Origin: Klebsormidium nitens
Taxonomy: Eukaryota > Plantae > Klebsormidiophyceae
Assembly: GCA_000708835.1 (NCBI GenBank)
Contig: DF237723.1
Coordinates: forward strand, 1 to 33,768
Length of the DNA stretch: 33,768 nt
Direction: 5' to 3'
How positions within the stretch are numbered: position 1 is the stretch's first letter; every line of letters starts with the position of its first letter. A model generated the notes under the pieces. The model saw only the letters and a program-made list of their open reading frames with translations. It did not search any database and was not told where the DNA came from. The translations under genes were made by a program, and so were the position numbers. Shown piece after piece: positions 4,654 through 32,648 of this stretch.

Positions 4654-4996
4654 GGGGGAATTTTGTTTCGCTATGGAGGTGACTGCCGAGATCAGTTAGG
4701 GAGTCTGCATCATGTGCTCGATACTAACCACGCATGCGGGGGTGTCTCGGATGTAGATTTAGATTTGCAGTCAGCGTGCCAGGTCGAGTCTGTCAGAGCG
4801 CATCTTGTGGTCATGGCAGACCTGGATAATGTTGCGGTGCGCAAGACAGGGCCTCACACATTGTATGCTAGATGCCCGCCGCCAAGGTAGAGTCTCCTTG
4901 GTCGACACGGAACTTCGATGGGTAATAGGCAAGGTTTACCTGATTATTACGTTGCGCTTGTCCTTCTTCGTACAGAGATCTGAGTTGGTATGCTTC

Positions 4997-5480
4997 CATG
5001 CATGCTCTTGCAATGTCGAGCTGGAATCTGTGGAATTTTGAGGGCCGTTCGGACCCGGCTATGCACTCATGGTTTACTTCAAGCTCTGGCCGCGCCGCCG
5101 GTCCCTGCTCAGCTAGGCGTCATTGCCCGGCGTGCACCATGATATCGCCTTTGAAGGCTTTGGTACGGTATAGGGGACCGGGAAGCTCATGTTTCGGCTT
5201 TACTACACCGATCCGGTGTAATGATACACTACCGTCAGCTACATATACATATGCGTGGCATGCATGTGGCCTTGTGGGCCAGCATACCTGGCAAGTATAT
5301 ATGACCATTCAGTATTACCGCGTGACATGTTTACACTCATACTAACTGAACCTCGCAACACATGGGCACATATCATTATATGACCGTCGCTCAAAGCTAT
5401 CTGTATCGAAACACTAACATGCATGATACCGTCAAGCTGACATATCGTCCCTGCTGGCGTAGGGCCACCTACGGCCCATG
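4997..5480. other. CATG-rich convergent-spacer segment 1 (GT61/RPL25)
   Basis: 12 CATG in ~484 bp by hand count (~2 expected). Contains CATATACATAT 5242-5252, GCATGCATGTG 5258-5268 and TACTAAC 5340-5346. Confidence 0.7.
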
Positions 5481-5643
5481 CAGTGTGCCAGTGACTCACG
5501 CGGCCCGAGATGGCCACTGGTTCGGGTGCAGGCAATGGAGATTAGGACGGACTCAAATCCAAAGAACGAGATGAGGCTCTAGAGTAGCTTCAGGTAGTGC
5601 ATCGTCATCGCAGCTCCAAAAGCAATCTTACAAAATCTTTTGC

Positions 5644-7446
5644 TTACTCCCCGTCAGCGCTATCTGTTTGAGTTCGGCCCGAAATTTTCAGGACTGGCAT
5701 TTTCAGATCTTTTGCCACTATCCTCAGAGCCGGATCGGCTGGTAGGTCCTTGAGATAGATGCTTTGTCCAATGTTTAGTCTGCTGATGTCCACTTCCAAG
5801 TATGGGGGAACTTTGTCGCCTGGGCACACATATCGGACCAATCGCCGTACTGTGTTTAGACGACCTCCTGCAAGAAACCAATGCTCAGGGACGTCAACTG
5901 AACAAACAATCGAAGTCTGGCCACTCCGAGGCACTCCTTTAGCTAAGAGAGTAGATGGCTCTGTGATATGCTAAACGAGGAGAGAGTACATGGCTCTGTG
6001 ATATGCTGAAGGAGGAATCCAGAAGCTTCTTGAGGCAAAAGCGTCGAGTCAACGATTGACCAAGCAAGGAGTAAGCTCCGCACCTTTCTTCAGGCCTGGG
6101 CAAGCGTCCTCCCCAATGAAAAGAAGCGGGACATCTACCGTGATCTTCTCGTCGGGAGAAACTCTCATAAACGTCACATTCATCGGCTCGTCTGTAGCTG
6201 CGTGCAAATGCACCTGCAGAACGTTCTGCCTGATCAGCGCTGATACAACGATCGGAGAAAAGTCTCTTTGGAAAGGCTGCCTTTGCGCTCACAAAGTGGC
6301 GCCAGGAAGACAGATGGCTTGGCACTCAAGCTTCATACCAGCAACACATCTCCTTATCATCCAGCCAAACTCTCATCTTTTTAGCACCAGAATCGTGAGG
6401 ATTTTTACGGTATCAAACGTTTCTTCCTCTTCGCAAGCTTCCCGCAGCGTCCAAATGAATGGAAGCCAGATTTTCTAACACCTGCTCATCCTGTGTCACC
6501 TGCTTTCTTCATAGAACCAGGCTAGAAGTACGTTTCAAAATCAGAGGCTTTAAATACGCTCAACCTGCAACCACCAACTTCATCTTACCGACTTCGGCAC
6601 AACTCTCTCCACCGTCTTCTTCGCTGCCGCCTCCTCCCCAGGCCGCCCCTCATACAGCTCCAGGTCCCAGGTCATCGCAGAAAAGAAGAACTTCCCCAGC
6701 GGCTGCAGAATGGCCGACAGCTGCTTATGCCCAACCGAGATCAGCCGCTTATCGCCCCCCTTGTGCCCGTCCTTCCCGCTGAAGATGACCCCCGGCACCA
6801 GGCCCTGCCTCCTCTCCTTCTTGTTCGGAATTTTCCCAGGTGCATCACGAAGGTAGGCTTTGATCACCGGCTGCGGCTTCTCAACCTTCCGGCTCGAAGC
6901 ACGCAGGAATTGCTCCCTATGCATTGACACTGAGGGGTCAACGTCGGTGTCTTCCACTACTGCCGCATTCGCGTAGTGTCGGACTTGGGAAAGAGGATTG
7001 CATTTGAATTGCAAGGGGTAACCCAGATTTCTGAGCCCAAACAAGGGAAGTTCTTGATTTTGACAAGAGCGCAGGGCTGGCTCAATGCTTCCAATTTGCG
7101 ATAATGGTTGGTGTTTCAGATCATTGTGCCCTGCCTGAACCTCTCGGCTCCCACTCTCCTGCTTTTGCTTGCCATCCCCGCTGCTTATCGAGGGCCCACT
7201 TCCATCTAAAGGAGGTGCACCAAATTCAAAGCCCTCAGGCCCCTGTCTCCGACTGGGAAGTCCCTGTCCTTCGATGAAATCTGCATTCCTCCCTTCATCA
7301 ACCAATCCAGCGCCGCTAGTGGTCGCATCCAGGCCACTGCTTGCCCGCGCAGAAAAGGACCCTTCAAAGACGGCACCTGACTTTCCGAATGAAATCTTGT
7401 AAGCACTGGGTTTGGTCGCTCGAATGAGCAACCGCCGAAGGGCCAT
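5644..7446 (-). CDS. RPL25: Organellar (probably mitochondrial) ribosomal protein L25/TL5 family, 3 exons, ~403 aa
   Basis: Exons 7446-6589, 6213-6084 and 5867-5644, all GT-AG and frame-consistent. The spliced product ...GLVPGVIF...VVPKS|VHLHAATDEPMNVTFMR...VDVPLLFIGEDACPGLKKG|GRLNTVRRLVRYVCPGDKVPPYLEVDIS... matches the plant bL25 pattern. The N-terminus MALRRLLIRATK is presequence-like. Confidence 0.9.
5946..6007. repeat. Two-copy 27-bp direct repeat in RPL25 intron 2
   Basis: AGAGAGTA[G/C]ATGGCTCTGTGATATGCT at 5946-5972 and 5981-6007. Confidence 0.85.
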
Positions 7447-8510
7447 CAGCGGGGAGAATGGCTGGTGGAAGCGTCAGCTCATGAAGAAGCTACAGCATTG
7501 AACACCACGGGATGGGGCACCACATTATCTAGTTGAAAGGCGGTCTCTGCATTCGGCTTGGAAACCCTGACACATGGCTCGATAAAATTGCGCAGCAAGA
7601 CTTTGGCCAATCCTCCTTCCAAACAAAACGACGTGACTCGTGAGGGTGGTGCAACTTAGTAATGGCGGATAGATGCGCCTCTGCCTCTGGCTCTACATGC
7701 CTCTCCCACGCCAAGCTTTGCAGCGATCGAGATGGATCGAGACGATCTGTTGACCCGTGTGAAGTTAGGGTGTGAACCCGAGTGGGTCGACAAGACAAAC
7801 CCGCTTTCATAACCAGACAAGACGTACTGCCTTTAATCATCAAACCGGTAACGTCACCAGATCGACGGTCAAAGCAGATCCTTTTTGGCAGATCGACCGC
7901 CCAGATTTCTCCAAGTCCACAGAATAGTTAAACTAAACAGGACGACAGAAATCTGTAGACCCTTGGGTTTCGATGCTAACGAGGGTTAGAATCAGCTTAA
8001 CACGAACCTGTCCAGCACCCTTTGCAACAGTGCAACTCGCAAGCTGCAGCCTGCAACGCCTTCTCACAAAAGGTGCTCAACATCTTTTGTTGCACTCATA
8101 TCCAACTTAATTTCAAGCCGCCACAACCTAGGACTTGGAGGAGGTGCACACAAGGGTCTTGTCGGGGCATCGGGGGCCTTTCTTGGGTAGCAGGTGTGTG
8201 CAACAGTATTGCCGCCGGGCGCGGCGGCTGTGCTCAGATCTAGAGGCCAAGCGTGTACGTGCTGATTGTTTTCTGCTGGATTCCAAAAAGTATGATGTCC
8301 TTTGAGGGCATGTTTCCTTAGCAGAATAAGAAATACTGGCTTTGCTAGCGCACCTTGTAGTCTGTAGATTGTAGGGGCAGGCCAAGCGAGGGTCCCGGCA
8401 CGAAGTTGCTTTACGCGCAAGTAGGCTGCACAGTAAACTATCAGGCTCGAGGAAACTGAAACATCTGATATCTTCTACATCTGGGGTGTTAACTGGCCCT
8501 GCATTAAACC
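7447..8510. promoter_or_regulatory. Head-to-head promoter/5'UTR region of RPL25 and the microprotein gene; includes ACGTCA (7851-7856) next to AGATCGACG (7859-7867)
   Basis: Divergent start codons are 1064 bp apart. The motifs match the plant hexamer and nonamer elements by sequence only. Confidence 0.5.
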
Positions 8511-10927
8511 ATGGCGGGGGGCAACTTTTTTGCCAGGGTGGTGCAGTACGTGGCAAACGAGTTGATTGTCGAGCGCCTGTCCAACCAGTGAGTCTAAACT
8601 TTTGCTTCAGAGTTTCCATCTTCTGCTCATCAGCAGTCTTCCTTTTCAAAACCTTTGATTTATCCTTGTTTGAAAAGGTGTCTTAAACACCTTGTGATTA
8701 TGTTTCAGCCTTCAGTGTGCTTTTATCAGTTCCCCTTCAGTTGTTGAATTGCGGTCTCAAGCCTCTGTTGTGCACTTGAGGAATCAGGCGGAGTTGTACT
8801 CCAGTTGCTTCCATCTGCATGGGGTACGTGAGCTTTCAGAAATTTCAGATGGTCTCCCTTAATTGTGATACTTTTCTGGCACGGTTGCAAAGCTTACCCA
8901 AACGTTGGCCCCATAAGTTTTCCAAGGAGTCAACTCATGGAATCATACTAATAGTTATAAACTTCCTATGTGAATGTTTTTCACAACCTTCTCGTGGCCC
9001 ACAGTTCGAGTCTTGTTGCACTGGTCTGGTTATGTTCCCACGCTGAGTGCATGTCTTATGTGTCCCTGTGCTATCGGATTTCTGCTTCTTTATCCAGATC
9101 GCATCTATGTGGTATCAAGGTCGCTGCTTACTCCCCCACGTCTCCAAAGCTCTGCTGGAGGCTTTTACCAACAGCTGCTTACGTAAGTAGAAGGAAGAAG
9201 TCATTTGATAGATTCGGCCCCTCACCTCCCACTCAAGCCAAGTCTTTTCTGTTTACTGTAGCTTTCTCGTGCTTGACTTCGCGGAGCTCTCTTGTGCTTG
9301 ACTTCGCTCAAGTCTTTCCGCTCCTCGATGCATCTTTCACTTTTGCAATTTCTTCCTGTGCTGTACTTGTCTCTCAAAAAGCCATCATGTTCAAAGGAAG
9401 ATAGCACACCGTTCCGCTAGAAAGTTTGTGGACATTTCAATCAGTCTCTTTGATTGCACTTGCTTCTCTGGAAGTGAAGCTGACTTGACTGTGTGACGTT
9501 GCCTTACAACAAAGCTCCGACCCAAAACCTGCAATTTGTTCTTACACATCCACCTTGTCAGTGTGCTACGAACTTTCAGTCTGGCGTTTTCCTGGCCGTT
9601 GACTCAGCAGTCTCTCTGTATAGACAGCTTATGTGCATGCTTGGTTTGCATTCAAGATCAATGATGCACAACACAGGAAGTCTTGACAAGTGCATCAAGG
9701 CTGGCTTGCTGCAGTGTTGGTTCCAACGAGGATTCTGACAATTCGTTATTCCAACTAGAAAGAGGTTGGAGACAGAATTGGTCTCTTCCCTTTTGTCCAT
9801 CGATATGTGCTTTCCTCTTGTTGACACGATAAGTCGTCATATCATGTCGTGCAACCAATGGAAGGACCAGTACTTAACGAGGAATTTACCTCGCATACCC
9901 TGCTGACATTGTAGAGGTCCACGAAAAGGAAAAGACCGCGTGTAGGAATCGTATTCGTGTGAAGAGAAAGGAGGATTGGATGTTTACTATGTCTACTTTA
10001 TTGCTCATGTGCAGCCCCTCCTTCCAGAGATGGGCCATCCGGACCAGCAAACAGATGGAGGAACTGTCGAAGAAGAGTGAGTTCCTGGGTTACGACAGGC
10101 TAGTGTTTTCCTCAGCTTGAAACCTCTGCCACAGCTTTTGCTTGGTCGTTGTGCTTGGCAGCCCTGCGCTTTGCTGCTTCTTACGTGTGGTTTACTGTTG
10201 CATTTTTTTCGTCAGTGTGTGCTTTCAGAGGGTGTATGTATACTTGGTCGTTACAACTCTTCCGAGCTGTTTGTAAGCTGGTTGCACAGCTCTCCGAAAC
10301 GCCGCAGGGTCACCCGCGTTCTGAAGTAGGTGGACTCGGCACAGCTATAGTCACTTGTTTACTCTGTTCGGCCTTGTCAAAGCGAAACCCGTTCGAATAC
10401 TTGTGACAGCATGTTTGCAACCACTATTGCGACCGTATAGAGCACGACGACCAGCTGTAAAACCGTCTACTTGAAAGGACGATAAATCTATTTGACCAAC
10501 TGTCAGAGCGAGATTTTCGCGTCGGAACGTTGTCTGCGTACTTGTCAACAGAAACGCCACGTTTCCTCCTGCACTCAGGCGCTGATTACCAGCAGCAAAT
10601 AGCAGAGCAAGCGCGCACCTACGCAGAGGCCCTGAAGGATGAGGTGAGAAGGAACTCAGCCCACATGTGCAGGTTACCCTTGTTGTCATGTTCCAACTCA
10701 GGAAGCGATAGCGTTTCGTGCTCTGTTCATTTATGCGAACCTGGAAGTCAAGCAGCTCCATGCATCGACTTTTGATGAACTTTACGGTGAAAGGCCGCGT
10801 ATTTTCCGCTCTGCTGATCTGGATATCGAGATCGAACCGGCTTTCATCCGGTAAGATGAGCAGTTCTTATGGTGCTTCGTTTTCGCAGGTGTCTAAGGCT
10901 GCGAAGGATGTCAACAAGAGGATATGA
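8511..10927 (+). CDS. Conserved-looking 80-aa microprotein in 4 small exons, uncharacterised
   Basis: Exons 8511-8587, 10015-10076, 10579-10643 and 10889-10927, with donors gtgagt/gtgagt/gtgaga, cag acceptors and matching phases, totalling 243 nt. Product: MAGGNFFARVVQYVANELIVERLSNHPSFQRWAIRTSKQMEELSKKSADYQQQIAEQARTYAEALKDEVSKAAKDVNKRI. It resembles small land-plant proteins beginning MAGGNF (from recall, not searched). Confidence 0.85.
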
Positions 10928-11549
10928 GGCGTCAGGTCCACGGAAATGTCACCTTACGAAGTGGTCAAGCTCTCAATGACCGTCTGTACACTATAGAAAA
11001 GCCAAGCCTCTTAAAGCAGGCATTTTTCGAGGTAACAATCGAGTATGGAGGTGCTTTCACTTGGCTCCTCAAAAAGTCGATGTCCAGAAGTTGGGTCTCT
11101 TAGAGGACGCTGATTAAGCTGACCGGAAATTGTCAGTCCCTGTTGAGTCACGAAGTGATCAATATTTCAGCAAATCCTCGAAAAGCTAAGAAGCAAAGTT
11201 GGCAAAGTTGCATCTGACATGAGGATAGCGATCCATGGAGCAATCAGAGCGCTGAATACCAAAAGTGGGGACAAGGAGGGCCGCAACTTGTTGCAGTGCG
11301 CACTTTCGCCACCCGTGAGAATGTTACGAAAATCATAAGATCGTTACTGATCACCGAAGTAAGGCCGGTGCAAAATCACTCGGACTCCATGATCCTTTTG
11401 CGTCTGTCGTACTTTTTAAATTGATATTCAATTCCTGCAGACTTCTTTGCAGGATATAGATAGTAAAAACGAATAGGAATAGAACTAGTCCTTAAAGAGC
11501 CTTTATCATTAATCGTATATGCAATCGTTCTACCCGTGAGGTGACTTAA

Positions 11550-12199
11550 CATGTGCATGCAACTCAATTTCAATCAACGGGGCCGGGCATATGAGGGTCC
11601 ATATATGCGATCATGGACCCTAGTAAACGAGATGGTTCCCTGATCCTGATGCACGAAACAATGATATCATGCAGCCCGGCCCACTGCATGACCCGGCCCC
11701 ACCGCACTAACAGTCAGTGGTATGGGCCGCGCGTTGCTAATTGAAGAACAGGATCGCTCCTGTAACTTGAAAGCTTATATGCGAATTCATATTCCATACA
11801 TGCACCGTGACAGGGGGCCGGCGGCCATGTCTTCATAACAGCTCGTTATATGATGTACTAACCCATGTCACAATGTGGGCCGCGGGCCGCGCGCCCGCGA
11901 TCCCATTGTGCTCATATGCATGTGCATGAGTGCGGCGGCGGGCCAGGCAGTACAATTTTGCAGTCGCAATCAGCCGAATGTTTGCGCGCAGTCTGCTTTA
12001 AGTACATATATGATGCATGCCGTCGTGATGCCAGGGCCTGATGTAGTCACGAAGACTCGGATGCCAATGACTGTTGTGCTTACATGTGCATGTGCCGCAA
12101 TTCTTCCACAATAAGCGTTCACCCCGCACAGGCGGCAACAGACTTTGAGCGTGCACGCAGGTGCACGGATGTTTTCATGGTCCACATTGCATTCACATG
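11550..12199. other. CATG-rich convergent-spacer segment 2 (microprotein/MVD)
   Basis: 15 CATG in ~650 bp. Contains TACTAACCCATGT 11856-11868, ATGCATGTGCAT 11916-11927, CATGTGCATGTGC 12083-12095 and a hairpin AGGGTCCAT-10nt-ATGGACCCT at 11594-11621. Confidence 0.75.
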
Positions 12200-12266
12200 A
12201 GCGGTGCAGAATCCGGCATCGAGCAGCCAGCATCCTCAGCTTTTCAACAGCTGCAACGTTGTTTGT

Positions 12267-15200
12267 TTATGAAACCGGAGGGAAGCCCGTCCTCGCATCT
12301 AATAGCAGTGGCTCTAGCGGCTTCTCACACACTTGTGGCCCCATCCCAACCCGAGTAGACATGATGTATTTCAACTCGCCGGGGAATTGCAACCCGGGCT
12401 TCGCCTCTTTACTGATCTCCGGTGCAGGCAGATCCCGGATGTCATCTGCCGAGGAGACGCTAGCTTCTTTCAGCAACTCCGCGCTTTCGACGTACTCGTT
12501 CAGGGGGGTAGAATCCGAAGGGGGAAAGTGGTAGAGCAGCCGTCGGAGGAGGGCCCCTCGGTCCGCTTCCAGGCAGAAGAGGACAGCGTTTGGCCCCGCG
12601 TCAAATGTGTATGCCGCCTGCAAGTTTCGCGAGGATTGTGGATGAGACCCAAAGGAGATGCAAAGCCAAAAAGTCGACGCTGTACGAAAGGCACCCTCTG
12701 CCCCGCTTCACTTCTTTGTCGAGTACGTTCAAGCTCTGCAAAAGAGACCCCAGCTTGCCGCCGGCAACGTCATCCAAGGGTTCACATTCTGGCTGAAAGG
12801 CTAATGGTGACCCAAGCAATCAAGTCTCTGCTTTGAAAGCAAACCCTGACAGCAACTTGCATTCGCAGTGGCTGGAAAAAGCGTTTCATGCCGCCTTTGT
12901 CACTGTCTCCACCACATCAGGAGCAATCCCTGCACTACCATCGCAAGAGTTTGGCATAACTGCAAATCATTTCAAAACTTCAAGTGGACGTCGTCGGATA
13001 CCGGCCTCGGCTGCCAAACAGCTCTCGATACGTTCTAGTCTCGCTTCCCGTTGTTCGCCCATCCTCGATCAGCCTGCACAATTCAGCGCCCAAACAACTC
13101 AGAAAGCCCGCTCCAGCCCACGATTCATGATCACCACACAAAGAGTTCGCTTTCCCGACCAACCTTTATCTCCCCCGCCTGCGCGTTCCACTGCTCCACG
13201 AGACCGATGACCTGGCGCGACGCATCGTTCATGTAGAAGATCGGCGGTGACGTGTCAAGACACGTGGCGTGGAATTGGTTGCTGTCGGCCATCGTGAGCG
13301 CGCCGAACGCCTGGAAGTCGCGCGCGGCAATCGCGCGCTCCATTGCGACCATCCGCTCGGGAACCACCGCCTGACGCAAACGGACTGAGTTTTAGGACGG
13401 AATTGAAACCTAGGTCCGGAATGAATCCTTTATTCACCAATGATCGACTGTCTAGACAGTGGCAGATTTCGCAGGTGCGAAGATCCTAGCCGCACCGCTG
13501 TTCTGAGCGCAAGTGCACGTAAGGACCCGAAACAGCTGCACGCTAGGAGGGTCCGACGCAATCGCCAGAAGAAAATCAAACTCCGCACACCGAAGCGGTT
13601 CCACTCTTCTCCACCGCTTCATTCACTCTGAGAGTACCAAGTGACGGGGACAGCGCAACAATCACTCAACGGGCAAGATTTACACGCATTCACAGCGAAC
13701 GTCAGCGGCAGGATGACGTCATTGCGGGATGCTCGCTTCCTGCCTACGAAGTCCTTCATGTGAGCGTCGCGGAAGGGAGGAGGCTCACCTTGGCTCTATG
13801 TAGAAGCAGCGGGCTCGTCCGCACGCTCTGCTGCATGCCCGCGGTGCTGCTCGTGTCCTTCTGCCGGTCGTTCACCTGCGGAGCGGGGTCGAGAGCTGAG
13901 CAAGAGCGGGTCACCAGCGGGTTTAGCACGCGTCAAGAGCGGGTCACGAGCGGGTTTAGCACGTTGCGAGCGGGTCACGAGCGGGTTCAGCACGCGTCAA
14001 GAGCGGGTCACGAGCGGATTTAGCACGTTAAGAGCAGGTCACGGGCGGTTTAGCACGCGTGAAGAGCAGGTCACAAGCGGGTTTAGACGCGTTACAAGAG
14101 CGGGTCACGAGCGGCTTAAGCACGCGTCAAGAGCGGGTCACGAGCGGGTTTGGCATCCGTTAAGAGAGGTCAAAAGCGGGGTAAGAGCAGGCTACCTGAT
14201 GGGCGTGAACATAGGAGAGCTGAGTTTGACACGGCCTGAAGTGCGCTTTGTGATTCTTTTGAAGCGGTACTTTTCTAGACATAGCAGGATACGAATTGGC
14301 GCCAGTATGAGGATTCACGTGTAAATTGTAGAGATTGAAGACGACCGGTGCAGCGAGAATGGAGCAGGGATTAGCATCCGATAAAATTTGTTGCATATCG
14401 GGGATTGGTCACCGGCTTCCAAAAGGTGAAAAGATGCATAATGCCCGCTCTTGCTCACTTTTCTGATCAAGAGACTCTCCGGAAAAATTGCAAGGACCCG
14501 AAGTTGCGAGCAAACAGACTGCTGAGAGTCTTGCGGCGCTTCTAGTCCTTTGCAACTCGTTCTTCGCAAAAACGTTCGAGACTTGGCCCTCTCCATTCCG
14601 TCCCCACATCGGATTGAAGGTCCGCACTATCTCCCTATCTTGCATCGATGTACAAAATTTTGGACCTTTTGCGATTTCGTCCAGAAGGGCTGCTGGAAGG
14701 CGCTTTTCTTCGCCAACAAACTTTCAAAAGGATGCAGTAACGTCTAAGTTGCGCGCTAAAGGCACTCCTGCAAAAGGAACAGCACAAACGACCGAGAGTT
14801 TGAATACGAAGGCTCACCACGGCCACCAGCACTCTAAGGTCCGGCCAGTGCTCCTCCCCGGCCACCTGCTCCGCGATGCTATCGTGACCGTCCGATGCCT
14901 GCACGATGCAGATCGACGGTGGACGCTTCATGCACAATGGACGGTGGACGCTTCGATGCTTCTCAAGCGAACCTCAGTAATCTGGACATCTTTGGAAACG
15001 ACAGCTGTACACGAAAAGAAGCCGTTTCGAGAGACTTCAGCTGACAATAGGATTTGCTTCACGCAAAAGTTCGCCTGCGGCCAAGCAATGGGACCGAGGG
15101 GCTCCCTGGGTTCGGCAGTAAGGATGAAACTTCGCACTCCCGGCCGAAGGGCGTTCTAAGAAACGGTCCCTGAGCCATCAGCACGAAGGGCGAAGATCGT

Positions 15201-20672: not shown

Positions 20673-20677
20673 CCTTT

Positions 20678-21058
20678 CATGTTTGGCATGATTAAGATCG
20701 ATATAATCTTTCATCCAAATGGATGACATATCTAGCTCAGTGGACGGCTGCGGCGCTGCGTGGTAGACTGAAATGTGGATGACCACTATCAGCAATCATG
20801 TTAAGCTGGCAATTCGTTGCATGTGCCAGGCGGGCCCGCGTGCAGAAACAGATTCGATTGTGGCCTGCAATCATTATAACTGATATCATAGTACCTATAT
20901 GCACATGCACATGTCATGCATGCCGCCGACATACTAACCCATGTGGTGAATATATACCGTACGAGCTGCGCGTACGTACGCGTGTTGTCGTGCGATCATG
21001 CAGTCCAGCGACAACTGCAGCCGGCACTGCACGTTTGCCTGCACGAACCTGCCGCATG
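20678..21058. other. CATG-rich convergent-spacer segment 3 (IMPACT/SKP1)
   Basis: 11 CATG in ~380 bp. Contains GCACATGCACATG 20901-20913, TACTAACCCATGT 20932-20944 and a perfect 14-bp palindrome CGCGTACGTACGCG 20969-20982. Confidence 0.75.
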
Positions 21059-21495
21059 CACGTTTCAAGGCCGTTGAGTAATCGTGCATTTGTCTAGCGG
21101 TATCTGAGTCTCCGGGCCGCCCTGGACCATATGCGAGTCATACGGTGTGTGGAACAAACTTCAGTCTTTCCCTTTATCGTAAGAATTCCTCTCACGATGC
21201 CTGGGCCTACGTCTGAATCATGCGCGGCTATCAGGATCAATTTCAACGCTCTGAATACTCTTCAGTGAGGGTCCTCCGGCTAGATTTCTAGATCAGACAA
21301 ACCGATCAATCAACAATTGCTGCAGACCTTCCTCTGCACTGTCCTGCGCTACTTTTGATATAAGCAACCAGATCCACATCTTTGGTCTGCAAGAAGCTGT
21401 CACACAAGCAGTTACCCTTCCCGCATAGTGACTAACGAAGGCCTAAAATTTTGAGTCTTTAGTATCTTCCTCTCAACGCGAAATGCAGTCCACGG

Positions 21496-24400
21496 TTAAG
21501 AACCGTGCTGACCCACCCTTTCGGGAGGTGGCGGCTTTGCCACCGCGATCGACACGATGCTTCCCGATGCCAGCCGCACGCACATGCTCATTTGCCGCCC
21601 GTCGGGTGCCCACTGCTCCGCCACGTGGTCGTCCTCCAGCTCGACACCTGGCACGCCCCCCCGCATCCCCACGTCTACGATCGGGTCGAAGCCCACCCGC
21701 CGGATAAACGACTGCAAAAACGCCGCCGTTTGTTGGGCCTCCAAGAGCGCGATCCCCGTCCATGGCTGGTGCGACCGGTGGCGTGCCGACCCGTTTTCCG
21801 CTCGGGTCCGGGTCTCCGCTCGCTTTTGATTTCCAGCTTGGCTTTCTTCCTCTGCTCCGCGTTCAGTCTCCGCTCCTTGTCGGGTCTCCTCCCGGTTCTG
21901 CGTTCCCGCTTGGGTGCCGCTTTCCGCTCTACTGTCAGCCTCCGCTCTATTGTGCGATGCCAACCCGGCCTCCACGGACCCGCTATCTTCCGAAGCGCCT
22001 TTTCCTTTCGGCACCCCCCCCTCTCTTCGACTCACCTCCTCACGCGCCAGCTCCCCCGTCCCCGCTCTTGCCCCGTCCGCACTCCTGCTTCGCTCAACCA
22101 CCGGGGTTACTCCCCCTTCGGACGTCCTTTCGCTCCCCATGCTAGTTTGCCTGCCGAGCCGCGCCCCCGCACCCTCACCCCCCCCCGACTCCAGCCCAGT
22201 CCGCTCCCCCCCACTCCGACACCGCGCCGCGGCGTCCCGAGCCGCGGCCGCCGCCGCCGCCGCTGCCTCCGCTGCTGCAGCTGCCGCAGCCACGACAACA
22301 TCGGCTAAACCGTTTTCCTCCTTTTCAGGGGGTTCCTCCGGGCGCTCCTCCGACCCCCCCGAAGGGCTTCGGCTCCCGCGCAGCTGCTCATGCAGCTCTT
22401 GAATTGTGCGCAGCTTGGCCTGGATCGGGTCCTCGTCTCCAGGGGCCCGTCGCCGCGCCGGGGGGGTCGCCGGGGGTGGCATCGTACCCCCCCCAAGAGA
22501 GGCTTGGAGCCGGTCTTGGCTGGATGAGGCAAGTGCCAGAATCTCTTGCATGCGCTCAGTCCAGTCTGAGGAGGCAAGGGCGCGGGGGCTGGAGAGGAAC
22601 ACAGCGGCCGGTTTGTCAGCTCTTGGTCCGAGCTAATCGGACAGTGTTTCTCTCGGTCGGTGTCCTTTCTCACAAGAAGATACTTCTTCCCGTTGAATGT
22701 TTTCCGGGTTTTGCGACCATAGGCCGGAAATGTACATTACAAAGCATGATAAAGACTTGCTGACATGCACGGGCGAGGCTGAGTGGATTCGATCGACAGC
22801 CCCACTGGTGAAGATGTACGGTGGGCAAACTGTAGTCTAGCACCCCGTCCCAAAGCCTCCCTGTGAGTGGAAGCCTTCAAACAGTGAAAAACGAGCAGTC
22901 CGCCCCACTTGAACACCTCTCCCGTTTCCGGGTCGCCTACAATTCTCCAGTCTCAGCAGTGTATATAAGCTCGTCACAAGCAGTTTGCCATCCGTCCTGA
23001 ACAACCACTTCCTTCAGCAGTATTCAAAGACCCCATGGCCATGAACCTCTAGACAATCACACCCCATCCCTCTTCTTTTACTGTCAGATCCGTAAAAACA
23101 AAGCCCACTCGCCTTTCCAGGGCGTCCTTTTTCCCCGCCGCCAGCTCGTCGCCGTCGCCCTCTTGCTCCGGCAGCAGCCCGTCTTGCCCCGCGCTCTTTC
23201 CCAGCCACGACCCCAGCCGCGAGTGCCCTCGCTGTCCACTCTGCCTTTGACTGCCCACGGGGGGCGGGGTCCGGGGGGACACCTGGCAGGCGAAATGGAC
23301 CCCCTGAATCACTTCACCGCAGCGGCTAGCGAACGCAAAGCAGGGCTAGAGGAGCTAGATGTTGAGAATCAAGCAAAGAGGAGCGACGAGAACGTCGAAC
23401 GTCCGTTGGTGGTTGACAGTGTCAGGTACAAAAGCACTCCGAGCAGTTGGGCGGCCGCGACAAAGACGGCATGGTTGCAGAAATCACTCCAGAGAAAGAA
23501 CCTCACCAGCTCCTCGGCCTCAACGGATGCATCGTCATTTTCCTCGGACGGGGCTCTGACGGCACCCCGAGCAGACCCCTGCACAGTCCAAGCATGCGTC
23601 GTACTCAATTCTCCACTGATCGTGGCCAGAAGTACTGCGACCAATATTTGGTCCGAGGTACTCTCCCATAGATGCATGAGAATAAGGATTTAAGCACGGG
23701 CGCAAATTGAGCTCTGGGTCACGGGGACATAACTCCACCTGTGCACGACACGCTTTAAGGGAGCGTCGCGGCACCCGCGACGCTCCGAGAACCAATGGCG
23801 ATTGATCAGCGTTTTGGCGGGCACCAGAGCAGAAGGGACTGCCGCACGACCACTTCGTTAGACGGCTGCGAGTGCTTACATCTTCAGAAACGTGGTCATC
23901 CGCTTCTTCCTTCTTGCCCTTCTTCTTCTTCTTTTTCGACTTGGACTTTTTCCCACCCGCGCTGCCATCGATGAACTGCAGCAGGGCCTCCACCGAACGG
24001 TTGTCCTTCTTGCTGCCAGCAGCGTCCTGGATCTCTTGCTGCAACAAGGAAAATTGCTTGGTTTATGTTTGCTTTCCAGCGGGCAAGTTGAGGGGTTCGG
24101 GATCGTGAAGTCGGTGAGGGACAACGGAGTCATCAAGGTCAAAGTGATTGTTAGTCACAGTCAGTCAGGAAGTCCGGAAGTCAAGAGGTCCATAGTTTTT
24201 ACGTCCACTGAGACAAGAAGTCAAAAAGCCAAGTCACCAAGTCGCTCCCGCTCACCTTGGTCATTTTCTTGTCCTGCAGCTCCTTCCGCTTCCGTGCATA
24301 TAGCCGGTTCAGCAGCCGTATGCGGGGGTCGTCGGTCGCGTTCTTCACAGGCTCAAGCTTCTCCTCCTGTGATAACGACCCGAGAAGAAGGTTATCTAAC

Positions 24401-25980
24401 AGTTGACACCTGGCATATAGCCCGCTAGGTACTTTGTTCGGAAACCCTTTCTCTCCTGAAAACCGCTCGCATGATCATCGTTCTTCAGTCACGGTGTGCC
24501 CATCTGTGCAGTAAGCTTTGGCACAATGACCTGATCAGATCGTCGAAAGAGGTGGCAAGGCTTGCAAAAACAATGACAGGTGTTGCGGTCGGAATGAAAA
24601 TCGCAACTGAGGAGCGCGGCGCACTTCTGTGAGGTCGTCCGGAAGGTGGAACGTTTCGCGAATCTCCTCAGGCGTCTTCCCCTCAATCATGCGCGCAAGC
24701 GCACGGCTCGTGAGGTCCACCAGCGGCTTCATGTCCAGGCTGTCTGCCGCTGACGTCAGCTCGCACAGCACGCGCGTGTCCAGCCGGATGAACTTTTCGT
24801 CAAAGATCTTGCGCTCCTGGGGACAGCATGGAGTGAATGACTAATCAAAGCCAAGCTCTGGAGTAGCCGATTGAGATACGAGTTCAATATTGTCTTCATA
24901 GCACCAAGTGTCCAGCTGGCCGAGCCATTAGTAGTTGTTGTGCATCAGTGCCGCAAAAAGACGTTTTCATAAACCGTTGGAGTGCTGCTCTAGGAAAAGA
25001 ATGGCGTTTGTGTCAAGAGAGGGATGAGAGATCAGTGCAAGAAAAGGCGACCCAAAGAAGGCTCCAGGTACAAACAACACTTGGGAGGCTAGCACGCTTT
25101 TAAAGCAATCAATGCAATCACTTGACAGCAAGCGGACCAGTAAAGTTCTCATAAGCGTACCTTGTCCGAGCGCCCCGAGACGCGATGGAAGCGGCAGTAC
25201 TCGAGGATAAGCTTAAGCACCGCGGGGCTGACTTGCTTGGGAAGCGCCACCGGGGAGTCGCGGCTGTAGCCCCGCCCATGGCGGTTCACCTCGCGGTGGA
25301 CGTATGGCGAGAGCAACGCGACGTCCTTCTCCACCTTCTCGATGTCTCCGTCCACCGTTTGGATGAAGACGTACCCCGTCGGCTCCTGCATTAGGAGAGG
25401 GGCAGGTATGACTGCTGTCTCAAGGAACTGGGGACTTGAAGAGCTGAAGAGGTGTCGTCCTTGACGGTAGCGAACCGGGTGGTTGTCATATGCATCTTTC
25501 AAAGTGATGACTTTCTTGTCACATTAGGCCTGAAAAAGCATTGGCCATTTCGGGTAACCAGCTGCAAGCAGCCACTGCAAGAGTGGATTGGAGAACTTCC
25601 AGGTTTGCTCTCTTTGACCAATGGAGGGGCACCCTTGATGGAGTAGCTATCCAAGTTCCTGACTTCTCTGCCAGTCTCAATTCCACACATGCTCGTACTC
25701 CTGCCTCGAACGCTAGGCCACCACTCACCGAGTGCACGACCATCGCCCCCACACCTTCTCGGTCGCCCGACGCTCGTCCGGTGCCCGTCTGCGACTGCAC
25801 AATGCTGTGAGGTACGGAAGCATTTCCCTTTGAGGCACTTCCTTCCGGTCCCTCGGCAGCCCCTTCAGAGTGGCCATTCTCGTGCAGGGGGGATGCACCA
25901 GGCATACCCTTACCGAGCGCCGCTTCTAGAGGCCCCGGTGTAGAAGCATCCTTGCTGCTTCTGGGCATGGCAGCATCCAT
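21496..25980 (-). CDS. Type II SKP1-like protein (ASK20/ASK21-like) with long N- and C-terminal extensions, ~767 aa as modelled
   Basis: Core exons 25385-25161, 24816-24625, 24366-24256 and 24038-23880 are firm (FDEKFIRLDTRVLCELTSAADSLDMKPLVDLTSRALARMIEGKTPEEIRETFHLPDDLTEEEKLEP, RLLNRLYARKRKEL, RSVEALLQFI). Exons 25980-25699, 23578-23507, 23282-23113 and 22588-21496 are inferred from splice signals and phase. SDWTERMQEIL matches the ASK20/21 tail motif. Confidence 0.85.
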
Positions 25981-26848
25981 TTGCAAAGCGCATCACACGC
26001 GTCTCTCCTAGTAGGATTGTTGTGAACAGTCTCATTGAGCAGACAGCATGCGGCGGTGCCAGAAAATCATTTCTCTGGCTCCTAGGACCGCTGGGTGGGG
26101 ACAAGCGCAGAAATGCAACGAGACGCCTACAGTTGAACTCAGAGCGGGTCCTTTGTTACAAGAACAAAGAGGGGGCAATGTGCCACCGCAGTCGTGGCCG
26201 CTGGTCCAATGCACGGGAGTCTCTGCAAGTATCCCAATGTCACGTTCACACCCTCCAGGTTGCTGGTACAACCAATCTTCAGAGATTGGGATTATAAGCA
26301 TGGGCCAGATTCTCATGCTTCATAGCCAACCCTAGCTTAAAAGTCCTCCCCTATGCCGCCACCAAGGGTATGTATCAATACAGAACTTGTACAGACTAGG
26401 AATCATGAAGGTCTCAGGTCTGCTGCCCTCCCACCACAAGCTTCACTTTTGATTGACACTAGATTTGCACTTTCTTTGGAGAGTCACGTAGCGCCGCGGG
26501 TGGATAGAGTCCAGCGTTGCAGAGGGTGAGCATGAAAACAACCGCAAGAGTGTCAAGGGGTTTGAAGAGGACGTTCGTTTGAAGAGCGAGCAAAAAAGGG
26601 TTTCAGATTCAATGGCGTCTTTTCAATTCTTGATTGGTGATTCAACTTCAAGCGAGGGCGGCAACTAGAAAATTGTTGGACTCTGTTAGCAGAGAACGTT
26701 ACCTAGCCTCAGGGACTCTGTAGGCCGAAAGTGACTGAGAGAGGGCTTTAACGTTCAACGTTAATTCTTCTTTGCGCCTATCGAAAGGCAATCAGAATCA
26801 TCAGGATAAAAAGCTTCTGCCGCTGAACTTGGAAAAGCTGGAGGCAAC
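25981..26848. promoter_or_regulatory. Head-to-head promoter region of SKP1-like and PTB (~870 bp)
   Basis: Divergent start codons only; no TSS can be located from sequence. Confidence 0.45.
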
Positions 26849-29800
26849 ATGACGCGGGACACGGATGGAAACCCAAACTTTAGGTACTCGCAGCCACCGT
26901 CGAAGGTGGTGCATGTGCGGAACCTGCCTTGGGGGACGACGGAGGAAGAACTGATCGAGATGTGCAAACCCTTTGGGAAAGTGGTCAACACGAAGCTGAA
27001 TGTTGGAGCCAATCATAATCAGGCTTTTGTTGAGATGGTGAGCACAAGTATGTCGAAAGCCGAAACAATTTGTGGAGTTCAGTGAACTTATGCCTTTCCT
27101 GTGTGAGTTCGTGCTTATTGCAGAGTTCGATTGAATTCCATTTGCACATTGCATCTGGATTTGCATTCCATTTGCGCATTGCATCTGGAACAATCCACCA
27201 TTACCCAATTGTGTAGACATTCTTGTGACGTTTTCTGGATTGTTGTTCATTGATCGAGTCTTCAATGTTTGCTTGCAGGAGAGCTTGCAGCAAGCTGTGC
27301 AGATGGTAGGCTATTTCCTCTCCTCGTCAGAGCCAGCGCAAGTCAGGGGTAAGGCCGTCTACCTCCAGTACTCGACACGGCAGGAAATTGTCGCGACCAG
27401 GAACACAGGGGATGCCCCCAGCAACGTTCTCCTCGTGTCGATAGAAGGTGTGGAAAGCGGCCAAGTCAGCATTGATGTGCTCCATCTGGTGAGTCGGTTG
27501 TGGTTGTCTTACACAAGTTCTTATCCAGTCATGCGCTCATAAGAGCTTGTGCTGCAGAACTTCCTTGCTTGTCCGAGCACGCTGGCAGGGTGCGTGCCTT
27601 TTTACCTGGAAAGTATGCAAGCAGCATGTGCTCACGCCGACCTTTCGTCTTGTCTGCGTGTCTAGTTCAAAAGGGTGGGCAGGGATGGCAAGGCACCTGC
27701 CCTGATCCAACGAGGCTCCACTTGTCGGAGAAATAACAGTGTGTCCCATAAACCCCTTACCCTGCTCACCTCCCCCTCCCCCCTCCTCCCCGTTGGATTG
27801 TGTAACCCTAAAATACGTTGGTTCGGTTCTTGGTTGCAGAGCAGCTAGCTTCATGCTCGCAAATTGATGTTGCCTGTATGCCTGTCTGGATTGTTTGTAT
27901 CTTTGGCTGCGAGATCTTTGTTATCGTTGGATCGCAGCAGGATCACACCCATGTCCTTTGCTGTCCAATTTGACTTCACTTCTCTCAGAGAACAGTCTTT
28001 GTTCCAGATGTTTCTTTGAGGCCCTGCTGGCAGGATCTTCTTGTTTGCATAATCAGTTATGTTGGCAGCTAGACTTTGCTTTGGTATTCACAGGGCAAGC
28101 TCTAGCGAAAATGCTGTCTTTCAAAGCTCAAATGGTTGTGAACTTTGTCCTACTTTAATTTGGAGCTCTCAGGGATTTGCCATGCATGTCGGGCTCTAAC
28201 TGGTGTGCCCTTGCTTGACAGGTGTTCTCAGCGTTTGGCTTTGTCCACAAGATTGCAACGTTTGAAAAGCAGGCAGGTTTTCAGGTGAGTGAGAGCAATG
28301 AGCGCCAGCAGATGTTGCATTGATGCGTCGTGCTTGTTCTGATCTTGCTTGCGACCAATTGTAGGAGTGCAGCAGAGGACGTGCTAGCATCATGGATTGC
28401 CCACAATTTGAGCCCTTTCCTCTCTTCTGGTGCAGGCTTTGGTCCAGTTTGGGGACCACAAAACAGCAGAGCAGGCAAAGAATGCACTGGAAGGCAGGAG
28501 TATACCCCGGTGAGTGGCTTTAAAGAAGGCTAATGCAGTTTGTGTATGACACACTGTCGTGTTATCGTCTTGTGTGCAATCAGCGAACTGTATATGCAAA
28601 TACTGTTTCTGTTGATGTGTCGTGTTGCTAGACTGGTGTCTGAGGGAGTTCTGGCCTGTTGGTCGCTACACCCTGTTGCCCTCTCTGTGACTTAGCGGTT
28701 TTAGATGACCTCCGGCGCCGCAACTACCAGGAGCGAACGCTCTTTTATAGCAGCTGGGATTGAATTTTAAGCCTGACAGGATTAGTTCTCTTTGCAGATA
28801 CCTCCTGTCAGACGACGTGCCTCCCTGTACGTTTCGCATCACCTTTTCTGCTCACCAAGATCTTAGCGTCAAATTTCAGAGTCATCGAAGCAGGTGAGTG
28901 GTACTAAGGTCGCTAAGACAGGGGTGTTATTCTTTTCCACACAAGCAAATTGAAGAGCAACCAACTCGGTTCTGCCAGAGGTTGTCAGTGAACCAATCTG
29001 CAAATATGCTTTGAACCCGCAGCTGTGTCCGTCTTGTCATGTTGACCCGCTCCCAAGTGCTGGTTTCTGAATCTGCTAAGTTTGCCACACCCGCTTTGGA
29101 GTGCCTTTCATTAGAGACACCGTTGTTTGCTGCAGCCCCTACAAACAAACGTTTTGTTTCGCTGCAGAGACTACACAAACCCGTACCTTCCGGTTGCGGC
29201 TTCAGCTAATGATCCAAGCCTGGGGTCACAGAAAAAGGAGCCGGAGAGCAACGTTTTATTGGCGTCGATTGAGAACATGCAGTACGAGGTCACCTTAGAC
29301 GTGCTTCATACGGTATGTGGAACAGAGGTTTTCATGGCAACAAGGCTTGTCGCGCCCCTGTTCTGAGGCGCTGCAGGGCTCACACATCAATGCTGTATGT
29401 CACATGCGTGGGTTCTGCATAGATTCTGCGACCTCTGCGAGATTTTGGATCAGTCTATCTTGTTGACAGACTTGCCTGCAGAAAATGCTTCTGATCCGAG
29501 ATGTTTTGCCGTGTGCAGGTTTTCTCGGCGTTTGGTTTTGTGCAGAAGATTGCCATCTTCGAGAAACAGGCCGGCTTTCAAGCCTTGGTCCAGTACCCAG
29601 GTGAGAGCAGCATCGTGACGATCCCAGCAGGACTTTGGCATACAGGGTTTCTGATCTCTGAGAGTCTGCTATGTTGCCTTCAGCAGGAACCCTCGTTCGA
29701 GAGGATTTCGAAGTACGCAACTTGGTGAAATCAGTCAATGTACGATCTGCGCTTCTCGACTACAAGCAAGCTGCACGTCGAGGGGCCTCTCCTGCTCCCT

Positions 29801-31838
29801 GCTCTTTTCCATGAGGTTTTCTGGTGAATTTCTGTCTTTATCGCGGAAAATACGGGGGAAAACCGATTTATTTGCCCCAGTAAAGTCCGCGGCGGACGGT
29901 TGGTGTCATGTACGGGTTTGGTTGCGCTGGGGCACCAATCAAAAAAGATCGCGGAAGGAGATTCTTCAGAGTTTTTGTCACCAAAGCTGTCGAAGAAGCA
30001 AAAGCTGACTGACTATTTCTGCTTGCCCTCAGATGTGGCAACGGCGGCGGCTGCCAAAGAGCATCTAGAAGGGCACGCGATCTACGATGGGGGCTACTGC
30101 GTGATTCGGCTCAACTTCTCTCGGCATACGGACCTCAACATCAAGGTGAGCCACAGACGGCTCTCCAGACCGGAAAAGCCCTGCAACCGATGCTTGTCCT
30201 GTGTTCGTCTGAAAGTGAGGCTTGAGCAGGTTTTCTTGAAGATTGTTAGGGTTATCGCCTGTGGATCAGATTGTAACTTGGAGCAGAGATTCGATCTTCT
30301 GAAAGCCCTCGAGATTGGCGAGGAGAGTAGAGAAGAACGGAGCATGGGAAAGACGGGGCTTCAACTTTTGAAGGAAGACTTTCACAGTGGGACCCAGGAG
30401 TTGGACTGCCTCGCAATGAGCCGGGCCCGCGCTTTGCGGTTTTCTCGCTCCTTTTCCATCCAACCTGAGCGCCCCTTTCCTTTTTTCCCGCAGGCAAACA
30501 ACGACCGCAGCCGCGACTTCACCAACCCCACCCTCCCCCAGCAGGTCGCCGGCGCGCAGGCCGGCCTCGAGCAGCAGTTTAACGCTCCGAACCCCCTCTT
30601 CGACCCCAACGACCTGGCCTACAACACCAGTTTCGCCGCCCAGCGGGGAGGCGCCCCCGCTGGCGGGCCGCCGCGCCCTCCTGGGCCCCCGGGGGTTCCC
30701 CCCGGGCAGGGGCCTTACATGGGTGGACCTCACTACGGCCCTCGGCCGGGAGGTCCGGGGTACGGGCCGCCGGGACCAAGGGGAATGCCTGGGCCGCCGG
30801 GGCCGCCGCCGAGGGGTCCACCTGGGGGTGGTCAGCCAGGTACGCTTTCAAAGGAGTCAGGGAAATGATCTGAGTATCCTGCGAGAAGTTTTTGTTGTCA
30901 TAGCATCGGCACCCGTTTTTGGGAAGACTCGCCCGTCATCATCGTGAGCGCTGGTTAGTTGGGTGACCTACACTTTTGATCATTAACAGAACCGGGTGCC
31001 ATTTTTTTGGACTCGTTTCTGCGGCAGCAGATCTCACATCTTGGAATCACCGCCTTGTGGGAGTGCCTTCGCTTCATAGATCCAACCGAGGAGGTCTTGT
31101 TGGTGACTGCGCATCTAACTGCGATTGAGATTGAGTTTCCCGGGCCCTGTCGGAAGGTGGTCCCGACTTCCGGTTGCTAGATTATCTTTCTCACTTCGCA
31201 GCGGTCACGTTCAGTTGTGCATTTATCTACTTATTGGGAAGTGCATAGGAAGCAAATGGCGCTGGGAATAGGAAAGGGGGTTCAGGGGCACATTCTGGCG
31301 AGGCTGTCCGGCAGAGGGCTTTGAACGCTTTCTGAAGTTCACGGGAGTAGTCGTGAGATGTTTGCATTGGATGCGGCTTGAAGTTCCCGGCTTTCCCTGG
31401 AGTTTTCCCGTAAACCATTTCACTCTCCCATATCTCTGGCCGTGCTTCTGATTTCCAACATTGCGAGCAGTCCAATCCAAACTGCAGCTATGGCATTAAC
31501 GACCGCTGAGCGAAAGTGGACAATTGGCGGAGCCTTGCAGCGTCCTTGGAGACTAGATTGCTTCTACCTAAGCGGGCAGCCAGCCGTAATTAAGATGTAA
31601 CTCAGACGTGCCTTCCCTAAACGTCTTGTCATATGCAGGCTACATGCCAGCCGGTCCTCCAGGGCCACCTCCACCAAGACCGGGCTTCGGTGGGCCGCCC
31701 GGGCCTCCTCCCCCTGGTTACCGGGGGCCCCCGCCTCCGGGTGCTCGGCCTCCGTACGGCGGCCCGCCTCAAGGGGGCCCGCCAGGCCCACGGCCGAATG
31801 GCCCACCCCCTGGAGGCCCCCCTGGTACCGGATATTGA
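26849..31838 (+). CDS. PTB: Polypyrimidine tract-binding protein, plant PTB1/PTB2 type (3 RRMs plus Pro/Gly-rich tail), 10 exons, ~505 aa
   Basis: Exons 26849-27037, 27279-27488, 28222-28284, 28436-28509, 28798-28893, 29168-29312, 29519-29600, 30033-30145, 30494-30839 and 31639-31838 (1518 nt, all GT-AG). Motifs: PSKVVHVRNLPW, NVLLVSIE, VFSAFGFVxKIAxFEKQAGFQALVQ (twice), SAHQDLSVKFQSHRSRDYTNPYLP. Confidence 0.95.
27135..27189. repeat. Two-copy 25-bp direct repeat in PTB intron 1
   Basis: ATTCCATTTGC[A/G]CATTGCATCTGGA at 27135-27159 and 27165-27189. Confidence 0.85.
27840..27875 (+). other. Candidate 36-nt poison cassette exon in PTB intron 2
   Basis: ttcttggttgcag|AGCAGCTAG...GCCT|gtatgc, with an in-frame TAG at 27846-27848 and an upstream C/U-rich tract at ~27750-27791. 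Confidence 0.4.
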
Positions 31839-32191
31839 TGCTAGAGCAATGCATAAAGCAAATAGGTCGCCACTATCAATGTCTTGTGCGTCTTAGCTTG
31901 TCTGGGATATATGACGTTTGGTGCTTCGTTTACGTGCGGTCAAGATGCGCCTCAGAAGAGACGTGAACTCCGTTGTGGAGGTTTTAGCACGATTAAAATG
32001 CTCTGCTTTCGACCTGCTTAGTGAGCTATTCGATGCAACCCAGGATGTATGATTCTGAGAAGATGTTGACAAGCACTGCACACACTCGCCTGCAAGAGAA
32101 CTCGCGAGCGCTGATGAACTGAGAAATATTCTGGATGGTCATCATTGCACATCATCGGATCATCTGGAATTACTAGTATCGCAATTTGGTG

Positions 32192-32648
32192 CATGTCGTA
32201 GGTACTGCCCCGGAGCTCCGCCCATGAAAGCTTTCAGGCGCTCACCGAAAAGGTCACCGACCAGACACGATGACCTATTCGAAGTCTTCCTGCAGTGCAA
32301 GTGGCGCATAGCGCAGTACGGTAAAAGCCGAATCGAAATGGGCGTGATCGGCGCCAAGCATATACATATCTAGTTGCATGTGGATTTGCAGCTAGTCACT
32401 GTCAATTCCTGCATGCGCAGTCCGGGGCCCCCAATTATATATATGCACTGCATACATTAATCCGGGGACGCAATTTATATTGCAGTCAATTGAGTACCGG
32501 TATACGATCTTGACCCAAAAAGAAAAATAATTGGGAATATACTGCCACTGGCACAAATTGTCGCATGGTGACTGTATTTGGAATGATGAGGGCGACGGTG
32601 CCAGCATGCATGTGCATCCGTCGATCGCGCTGTTGACCATGACCATGG
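32192..32648. other. CATG-rich convergent-spacer segment 4 (PTB/HAD)
   Basis: 9 CATG in ~460 bp. Contains CATATACATAT 32359-32369, GCATGCATGTG 32604-32614 and ATGCATGTGCAT 32606-32617. Confidence 0.65.

Follow-up and report, generated by a model that had tools for sequence, protein, structure and literature searches.

The scaffold DF237723.1 of the alga Klebsormidium nitens (Klebsormidiophyceae; assembly GCA_000708835.1), which was analysed whole and whose 33,768 nucleotides are called the window here, carries eight genes that alternate in orientation (+ - + - + - + -) and thereby form four convergent and three divergent junctions. Each convergent junction holds one island of 0.6-1 kb in which the tetramer CATG is dense and in which palindromic tetramers as a class are in excess. 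The islands are listed below with their CATG-rich cores, their flanking genes and the spacers between the convergent coding sequences.

4950-5600: island 1, CATG-rich core 4997-5480, between the GT61 glycosyltransferase gene (+) and the mitochondrial L25 gene (-); spacer 4654-5643
11200-12200: island 2, CATG-rich core about 11549-12200, between the gene for an 80-aa protein (+) and the diphosphomevalonate decarboxylase gene (-); spacer 10928-12266
20650-21400: island 3, CATG-rich core 20678-21060, between the YigZ/IMPACT-like gene (+) and an Ala/Glu-rich last exon (-); spacer 20673-21495
32000-32850: island 4, CATG-rich core 32191-32806, between a Pro/Gly-rich last exon (+) and the HAD-like hydrolase gene (-); spacer 31839-32812

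Four of the genes are placed by NCBI coding-sequence (CDS) ranges, and the rest by Pfam matches on single exons, coding potential and synteny with a related contig; protein searches used exons one by one, never joined spliced models.

803-4653, +: GT61 glycosyltransferase CDS range, 522 aa (NCBI gene range; Pfam PF04577)
4654-4948, +: conserved stretch following the GT61 stop codon, its probable 3′ untranslated region (UTR), outside the island (blastn block 3669-4948)
5644-6924, -: mitochondrial ribosomal protein L25 CDS range, 229 aa (NCBI range)
8511-10927, +: CDS range of the 80-aa protein (NCBI gene range)
3′ end at 12267, extending past 16924, -: diphosphomevalonate decarboxylase CDS (NCBI range; PF22700 and PF18376)
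17982-20672, +: YigZ/IMPACT-like gene (UPF0029 and DUF1949), stop codon 20670-20672 (Pfam on separate exons; coding potential)
21496-25391, -: Skp1 (ASK21-like) exons and the Ala/Glu-rich exon 21496-22602 (synteny with the related contig L005; P0024, 55% identical)
26843-31838, +: RRM (PTB-like) and Pro/Gly-rich exons, TGA stop 31836-31838 (synteny with L005; translations)
32813-33737, -: HAD-like hydrolase gene, C-terminal exon ending at 32813 (weak Pfam matches, at the profile ends, to HAD_2 and Hydrolase)

The Skp1-like exons and the Ala/Glu-rich exon may belong to one gene or to two tandem genes; if they form one gene, strict alternation of eight orientations has a chance of about 1 in 128 under random orientation. 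The scaffold has no certain tandem gene pair, and placement at convergent junctions only and placement after any gene end look alike here.

CATG abundance in the convergent spacers

A sequence-only reading of this DNA had reported CATG clusters and shared words in the four tail-to-tail spacers and had proposed a candidate element for convergent gene pairs. Its counts were closely reproduced: CATG occurs 12 times in the 484 bp of 4997-5480 (12 reported), 13 times in 11500-12150 (15 in 650 bp reported, for a spacer given without boundaries; 11501-12500 holds 16), 10 times in 20660-21040 (11 reported) and 9 times in 32189-32648 (9 reported), with 8 occurrences in the control interval 8000-10000 (about 9 reported). 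In the binned counts, island 2 holds 10 and 6 CATG, and island 3 holds 11 in 20501-21000. The density is 22.3 per kb in the four spacers and 3.4 per kb in the remaining scaffold, a factor of 6.5. Dinucleotide-preserving shuffles yield means of 5.2, 9.2, 5.4 and 5.2 against the observed 12, 13, 10 and 9, or 25 against 44 in sum (about 4.6 standard deviations), so that local dinucleotide content accounts for about half of the surplus and leaves a real residue of about 1.75-fold.

The five words reported as shared between spacers were all found at their reported positions and occur nowhere else in the window. Thirteen 11-mers are common to spacers, where dinucleotide shuffles yield 1.3 and Markov-3 simulations 4.1, a modest excess over the latter (p about 0.02). 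Among the shared words, CATGTGCATGTGC is an example of the short-tandem-duplication kind. The islands align neither with one another nor with anything else in the window, in agreement with the earlier observation that the segments are not collinear copies. Restriction of the cluster to tail-to-tail spacers was borne out by a 400-bp sliding profile of palindromic tetramers against Markov-1 expectation across the scaffold, in which all flagged windows lie in the four convergent junctions (about 4800-5400, 11200-12000, 20600-21400 and 32000-33000) and no intron and no divergent spacer is flagged.

A class-wide excess of palindromic tetramers

CATG is the most visible case of a palindrome-rich island, not the unit itself. 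Taken together, palindromic tetramers occur at 1.62 times Markov-1 expectation in the spacers and 1.03 times elsewhere, and the 12 highest-ranking island tetramers by Markov-2 z-score are all palindromes, an outcome with a chance of about 4e-14. The boost is class-wide, since 15 of the 16 palindromic tetramers exceed 1 in K. nitens and also in its relatives and their ranking is not reproducible (Spearman 0.22 between species, 0.13 between halves of the data). CATG is frequent because CA, AT and TG are all common there, with the general palindrome boost added, and the reading of CATG as a special motif gives way accordingly to that of one tetramer among 15 of 16 boosted alike. The 120 non-palindromic classes fit a Markov-2 model (chi-squared per degree of freedom 0.89, p 0.81), against 5.2 for the 16 palindromes (p 4e-11).

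Both alternating (CATG, TGCA, ATAT) and non-alternating (AGCT, GGCC, AATT, CTAG, GATC) palindromes are raised in every island. The ratio for palindromic tetramers is 1.43-1.47 (Markov-1) in island 1, 1.5-1.74 in island 2, 1.52-1.67 in island 3 and 1.4-1.79 in island 4. Non-alternating palindromes reach 1.52 and 1.65 times Markov-2 expectation in islands 1 and 2 and 1.63 times expectation in islands 3 and 4, and alternating palindromes reach 1.36 (Markov-2), 1.52 and 1.39 times in islands 2, 3 and 4. Introns, divergent spacers and the conserved GT61 3′ UTR carry palindromes at 0.6-1.2 times expectation.

On self-complementary centres, exactly complementary flanks are observed 368 times against 245 expected (1.50), whereas flanks of the same purine/pyrimidine pattern without exact complementarity are depleted (0.84, range to 0.95). 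This exact Watson-Crick requirement points to base pairing rather than to DNA shape or the motif of one protein. The extra density amounts to about one palindrome per 26 bp, and the excess does not build up with palindrome length: for maximal palindromes of 4, 6, 8 and 10 bp alike, the density in the islands is about double that elsewhere. Dyad symmetry fades as a spacer is introduced between the arms (z 9.8, 4.5 and 3.4 at spacers of 0, 1 and 2). Period-6 direct repeats are in excess (z 8.4), and 6-nt direct repeats at gaps of 0-5 number 26 against 5.7. No hexamer in the islands passes correction under Markov-3, and neither 10-bp phasing nor regular spacing of palindromes is present in them.

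These properties bear on readings that had been attached to CATG. The RY element recognized by B3 proteins is not supported, with 27 occurrences of CATGCA/TGCATG in 3.25 kb of islands against 20.4 under Markov-3, and 18 against 16.4 in the relatives; such elements are present, but at gene ends and not at promoters. Z-DNA alternation as the driver is not supported either. Alternating purine-pyrimidine runs of at least 10 nt number 17 in the islands against 8 expected, the longest being 19 nt, but tetramers of symmetric purine/pyrimidine pattern without exact complementarity stand at 0.84-0.95 and non-alternating palindromes are boosted 1.5-1.65-fold, so that alternation is present and does not explain the excess. 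Exact complementarity on a 2-4 bp scale, with any letters, short tandem duplications alongside and no motif, argues against a sequence-specific reader (B3 or one methyltransferase) as well as against Z-DNA. As RNA, the islands show no folding stability beyond that of shuffles (mean z -0.05, controls 0.06, p 0.89); no Rfam family and no tRNA were found in them, and no Pfam domain in their open reading frames (ORFs).

Four further candidates were tried and rejected. A double-reading model, in which a strand-specific reader acts on both strands and palindromes, doubly affected, come out enriched on average, needs large scatter among the non-palindromes, and there is none at a chi-squared per degree of freedom of 0.89. 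Pooling of two strand-asymmetric halves predicts palindrome depletion by an arithmetic-versus-geometric-mean argument, and introns stand at about 1.0. GC/AT patchiness is slight (variance ratio 1.0-1.7), and the words with the strongest enrichment (AGCT, TGCA, CATG, CTAG) are mixed in composition. The signature of transposon footprints, a palindrome set between two copies of the same dinucleotide, was observed 43 times against about 35 from independence.

Dinucleotide make-up and possible transcription of the islands

The islands are high in AT, GC and CA/TG and low in purine-purine and pyrimidine-pyrimidine steps, with CpG and TpA at parity. In the spacers the observed/expected ratio (o/e) is 1.61 for AT and 1.39 for GC, and 0.98 for CpG and 1.00 for TpA, against 0.84 and 0.54 elsewhere. 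Gene bodies of K. nitens are CG-methylated (PMC5890265); the parity of CpG and TpA is as expected for, and suggests, DNA outside such methylated, mRNA-constrained gene bodies. Since CpG is undepleted in the islands, CpG-to-TpG decay, which had been named as a possible source of the CATG excess, is not its cause. ATAT and TATA are 10-11 times denser in the spacers than elsewhere, a stronger enrichment than that of CATG, and words of the type TATATG/CATATA recur.

Some words depart from this pattern. ACTAAC occurs seven times on the + strand of the four convergent spacers (4723, 5341, 5413, 11706, 11857, 20933 and 21431) and not at all on the - strand, and GGGCC outnumbers GGCCC there by about 15 to 5, a strand bias that stands out in islands symmetric in other respects. 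ACGT was not observed at all in islands 1 and 2 but is not scarce in islands 3 and 4.

On one side of each junction the island reaches within 6-90 nt of the stop codon (20678 after 20672; 32805 before 32813; 12195 before 12267), so that part of it must lie in a 3′ UTR, and on the opposite side 150-600 nt of ordinary sequence precede the island. In expressed sequence tags (ESTs) of Klebsormidium subtile (PMC1868727, supplement 4, part 32) there are about 24 CATG in about 30 good reads of about 190 nt each; by this rough hand count in a relative species, the 3′ ends carry about 4 CATG per kb, which is background. A clear poly(A) signal is not known from Klebsormidium (PMC1868727; Wodniok et al. 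2007). Many of the EST reads in supplement 4 consist of homopolymer stutter (runs of G, C and T), a possible source of the CCCCC and GGGCCC words reported by the same study near Klebsormidium cleavage sites.

Recurrence in related algae

The related contigs come from public runs and metagenomes. The closest of them, L007 (Logan SRR23617307), encodes a GT61 protein 98.8% identical to that of K. nitens and is syntenic over 12 kb; the GT61 proteins of L003 and L004 are 93% identical, and L001, L002, L005 and L008 (JGI) show 47-67% identity. Against L007 the coding sequence aligns, as do 295 bp past the GT61 stop, and the introns and island 1 (from about 4950-4997 to about 5589) are unalignable, which makes the island as unconserved as an intron. 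The blastn block 3669-4948 has 93.7% identity to L007, introns being unaligned, and palindromes in 4654-4948 stand at 0.6-0.96 times expectation; island 1 begins where this conserved GT61 3′ UTR ends. The stretch 4654-4948, which is about 90% identical to L007 and contains a conserved TACTAAC at 4722, is either a 3′ UTR under strong constraint or an element missing from the annotation.

The texture itself recurs in L007 at both orthologous junctions, with L007 1-400 as the counterpart of island 2 (palindrome ratio 1.54), and in L004 downstream of GT61, and is weaker in the distant JGI alga. Pooled, the relatives' islands show a 1.35-fold excess of exact complementarity. In L001 the GT61 gene converges on a different partner, a SpoU-methylase gene, and the spacer is again CATG-rich; the C-terminus of this SpoU methylase is the only Pfam match among the ORFs in the islands and around L001. 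Recurrence at convergent junctions without alignable sequence fits a putative strand-symmetric zone at gene ends. The earlier proposal of a candidate terminator, insulator or boundary element for convergent gene pairs is partly supported, through the convergent-only placement and the recurrence of the texture in relatives despite unalignable sequence, but not in its specific CATG readings. When metagenome contigs were scanned with exact patterns for a relative closer than these, no match emerged.

An exception is a GC-rich block at L005 3400-4000, with many CCGG, GGCC and GCGCGC-type palindromes (palindrome ratio 1.6-1.95) and few CATG. It sits between the PTB-like and Skp1-like genes, the equivalent junction in K. 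nitens being divergent, 1 kb long and island-free.

Observations on gene models and contigs

The 288-aa ORF at 6580-7446 (-) is 100% identical over the aligned part to P0026, the K. nitens mitochondrial ribosomal protein L25. The stretch 6925-7446 (-), upstream of the annotated L25 start, belongs to this ORF, which is conserved in the relatives' proteins (72% identity over 100% of the ORF with P0025, 48% over 93% with P0027), and the NCBI L25 model may miss about 170 N-terminal residues. The sequence TGACGTCA is present in two copies in the window, at 13714 and 24751, both within genes. L001 and L002 are identical for 15 kb and then 8-12% different over about 5 kb (15000-20500), which may stem from mosaicism between strains or haplotypes or from a chimeric assembly; because of the identical 15 kb, polymorphism between these two contigs is uninformative on the islands.

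Possible origins of the palindrome texture

The explanation favoured here for the palindrome excess, at a probability of roughly 40%, is that DNA repair left the texture as a scar where the sequence between gene ends is unconstrained. These zones would be the sole DNA at this locus on which coding, splicing, promoters and most mRNA requirements place no constraint, and they may be break-prone as a result of converging transcription. Small, repeated repair events with a fold-back or hairpin intermediate would produce junctions that are self-complementary over 2-4 bp, for instance where a hairpin is opened one or two bases off its tip, or by snap-back or templated synthesis as in polymerase-theta end joining, and would create short tandem duplications as well. 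With the accumulation and turnover of such scars, each species would show the same texture without conserved sequence. The exact-complementarity rule and the lack of a motif imply that base pairing took part when the sequence arose or else that symmetry as such is selected; from the pattern we infer both the repair pathway and the break-proneness of the zones.

Several points weigh against repair scars. The DF237723.1 islands gave no direct sign of breakage, indels or repair, and neither the relatives' contigs nor the metagenome scan supplied a relative close enough to polarise mutations. Introns are equally unconserved against L007, yet have no palindrome excess, which implies that the process is specific to these zones or that scars are removed from introns. 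One extra palindrome per 26 bp or so needs, by our estimate, scar-forming events at about 15% of the per-site substitution rate. Palindromes between repeated dinucleotides reach only about 1.2 times independence (the 43 against about 35 given above), and persistence across species fits selection equally well.

The main rival, possible though doubtful, is a selected zone of two-way termination and 3′-end formation, whose strand-symmetric words would be read alike by both transcripts; it would stop RNA polymerase II from both sides and may also keep nucleosomes off. Such a zone would account for islands that lie exactly between convergent 3′ ends and are missing from divergent spacers and introns, for the texture at orthologous junctions and at the non-orthologous GT61/SpoU junction of L001 despite full sequence turnover, and for the dense ATAT/TATA and recurrent TATATG/CATATA words, and it has precedents in yeast (bioRxiv 10.1101/2022.11.02.514956; PMC6420913). 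Selected signals should, however, over-disperse the non-palindromic words, which fit their model, and AGCT, GGCC, CTAG and AATT are boosted alike with no reproducible ranking. Nor is there any motif beyond tetramers or any excess of RNA folding, and the background CATG level of K. subtile mRNA 3′ ends, a rough count over the 200 nt before the cleavage site, and the lack of a clear Klebsormidium poly(A) signal (PMC1868727) also tell against it.

A related view, in our judgement unlikely, is that local two-fold symmetry over 4 bp, in any letters, is itself a selected signal for a two-way stop or boundary between converging transcription units, kept across the Klebsormidiophyceae despite full turnover of the sequence. 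It is similarly unlikely that such a signal is read by a symmetric factor, which might be a homodimeric protein or topoisomerase II acting on a 4-bp stagger.

It is less likely still that the islands serve as landing pads of a symmetrically placed DNA modification or as a chromatin boundary, in which palindromic sites (ApT for N6-methyladenine, 6mA; GC/CG for 5-methylcytosine, 5mC) are kept dense; the mark, copied to both strands, would delimit neighbouring transcription units, a function that we likewise hold improbable. That exact complementarity matters and that self-complementary dinucleotides are raised (AT and GC in excess; TA and CG at parity, where the rest of the scaffold has 0.54 and 0.84) would suit such pads. 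A methyltransferase, in contrast, reads one or few sites and not 15 of 16 tetramers alike, and undepleted CpG makes heavy 5mC over evolutionary time unlikely. In Chlamydomonas, moreover, 6mA at ApT is described around transcription starts, whereas the islands lie at gene ends.

A decayed transposon or miniature inverted-repeat family inserting between gene ends is very unlikely. Such spacers are safe havens in compact genomes, and a few imperfect inverted and direct repeats of 11-27 nt are present, but nothing beyond words of 10-14 nt aligns between islands, no match exists elsewhere in the window or, outside coding sequence, at related loci, terminal inverted repeats or target duplications of note and Pfam domains are lacking, and the excess is limited to the scale of tetramers. 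Base composition or chance alone as the full explanation of CATG has next to no probability left and is refuted: shuffles already yield 5.2-9.2 CATG per spacer where the 1/256 rule gives about 1.5-2.5, but the residue of 44 against 25, the class-wide palindrome excess (p 4e-11), a CpG o/e of 0.98 and the replication of the effect in each island separately and in relatives stand against it.

Comparison with known systems and significance

In yeast, bidirectional termination zones centre on the palindromic UAUAUA efficiency element (bioRxiv 10.1101/2022.11.02.514956), and short inverted repeats are enriched at poly(A) sites (Miura et al. 2018, PMC6420913). Like the islands, the yeast zones lie between convergent 3′ ends, are strand-symmetric and are rich in TATA/ATAT-type words. 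They are, however, about 120 bp long and AT-rich with one known RNA signal, whereas the islands span 600-1000 bp at about 50% GC and boost all 4-bp palindromes alike, GC-rich and non-alternating ones included, with no single motif. Bacterial repetitive extragenic palindromic (REP) elements and bidirectional hairpin terminators likewise place palindromic sequence in convergent spacers, but as longer, folding stem-loops, while the islands have no excess folding energy and no added palindrome excess beyond 4 bp.

P nucleotides at opened hairpins, hAT-type excision footprints and the snap-back or templated insertions of polymerase theta are known as single repair events. Their junctions, like the islands, are sequence-agnostic and exactly self-complementary over 2-4 bp, with short direct duplications; the islands differ in being a standing texture, with about one extra palindrome per 26 bp in one spacer class only. 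To our knowledge no earlier work describes a standing palindrome texture that is restricted to a single class of intergenic spacer, and the literature searched on Klebsormidium palindromes, poly(A) signals and methylomes and on palindromes at convergent junctions holds no description of it.

Whatever its origin, CATG-based readings of such regions, as B3 sites or 6mA motifs, would mislead. If the repair scar is true, the islands would be a natural record of the break-repair pathway at work where transcription units collide, and a compositional marker of truly non-genic DNA that would be useful for gene-end annotation in streptophyte algae. [quoted passage not shown]

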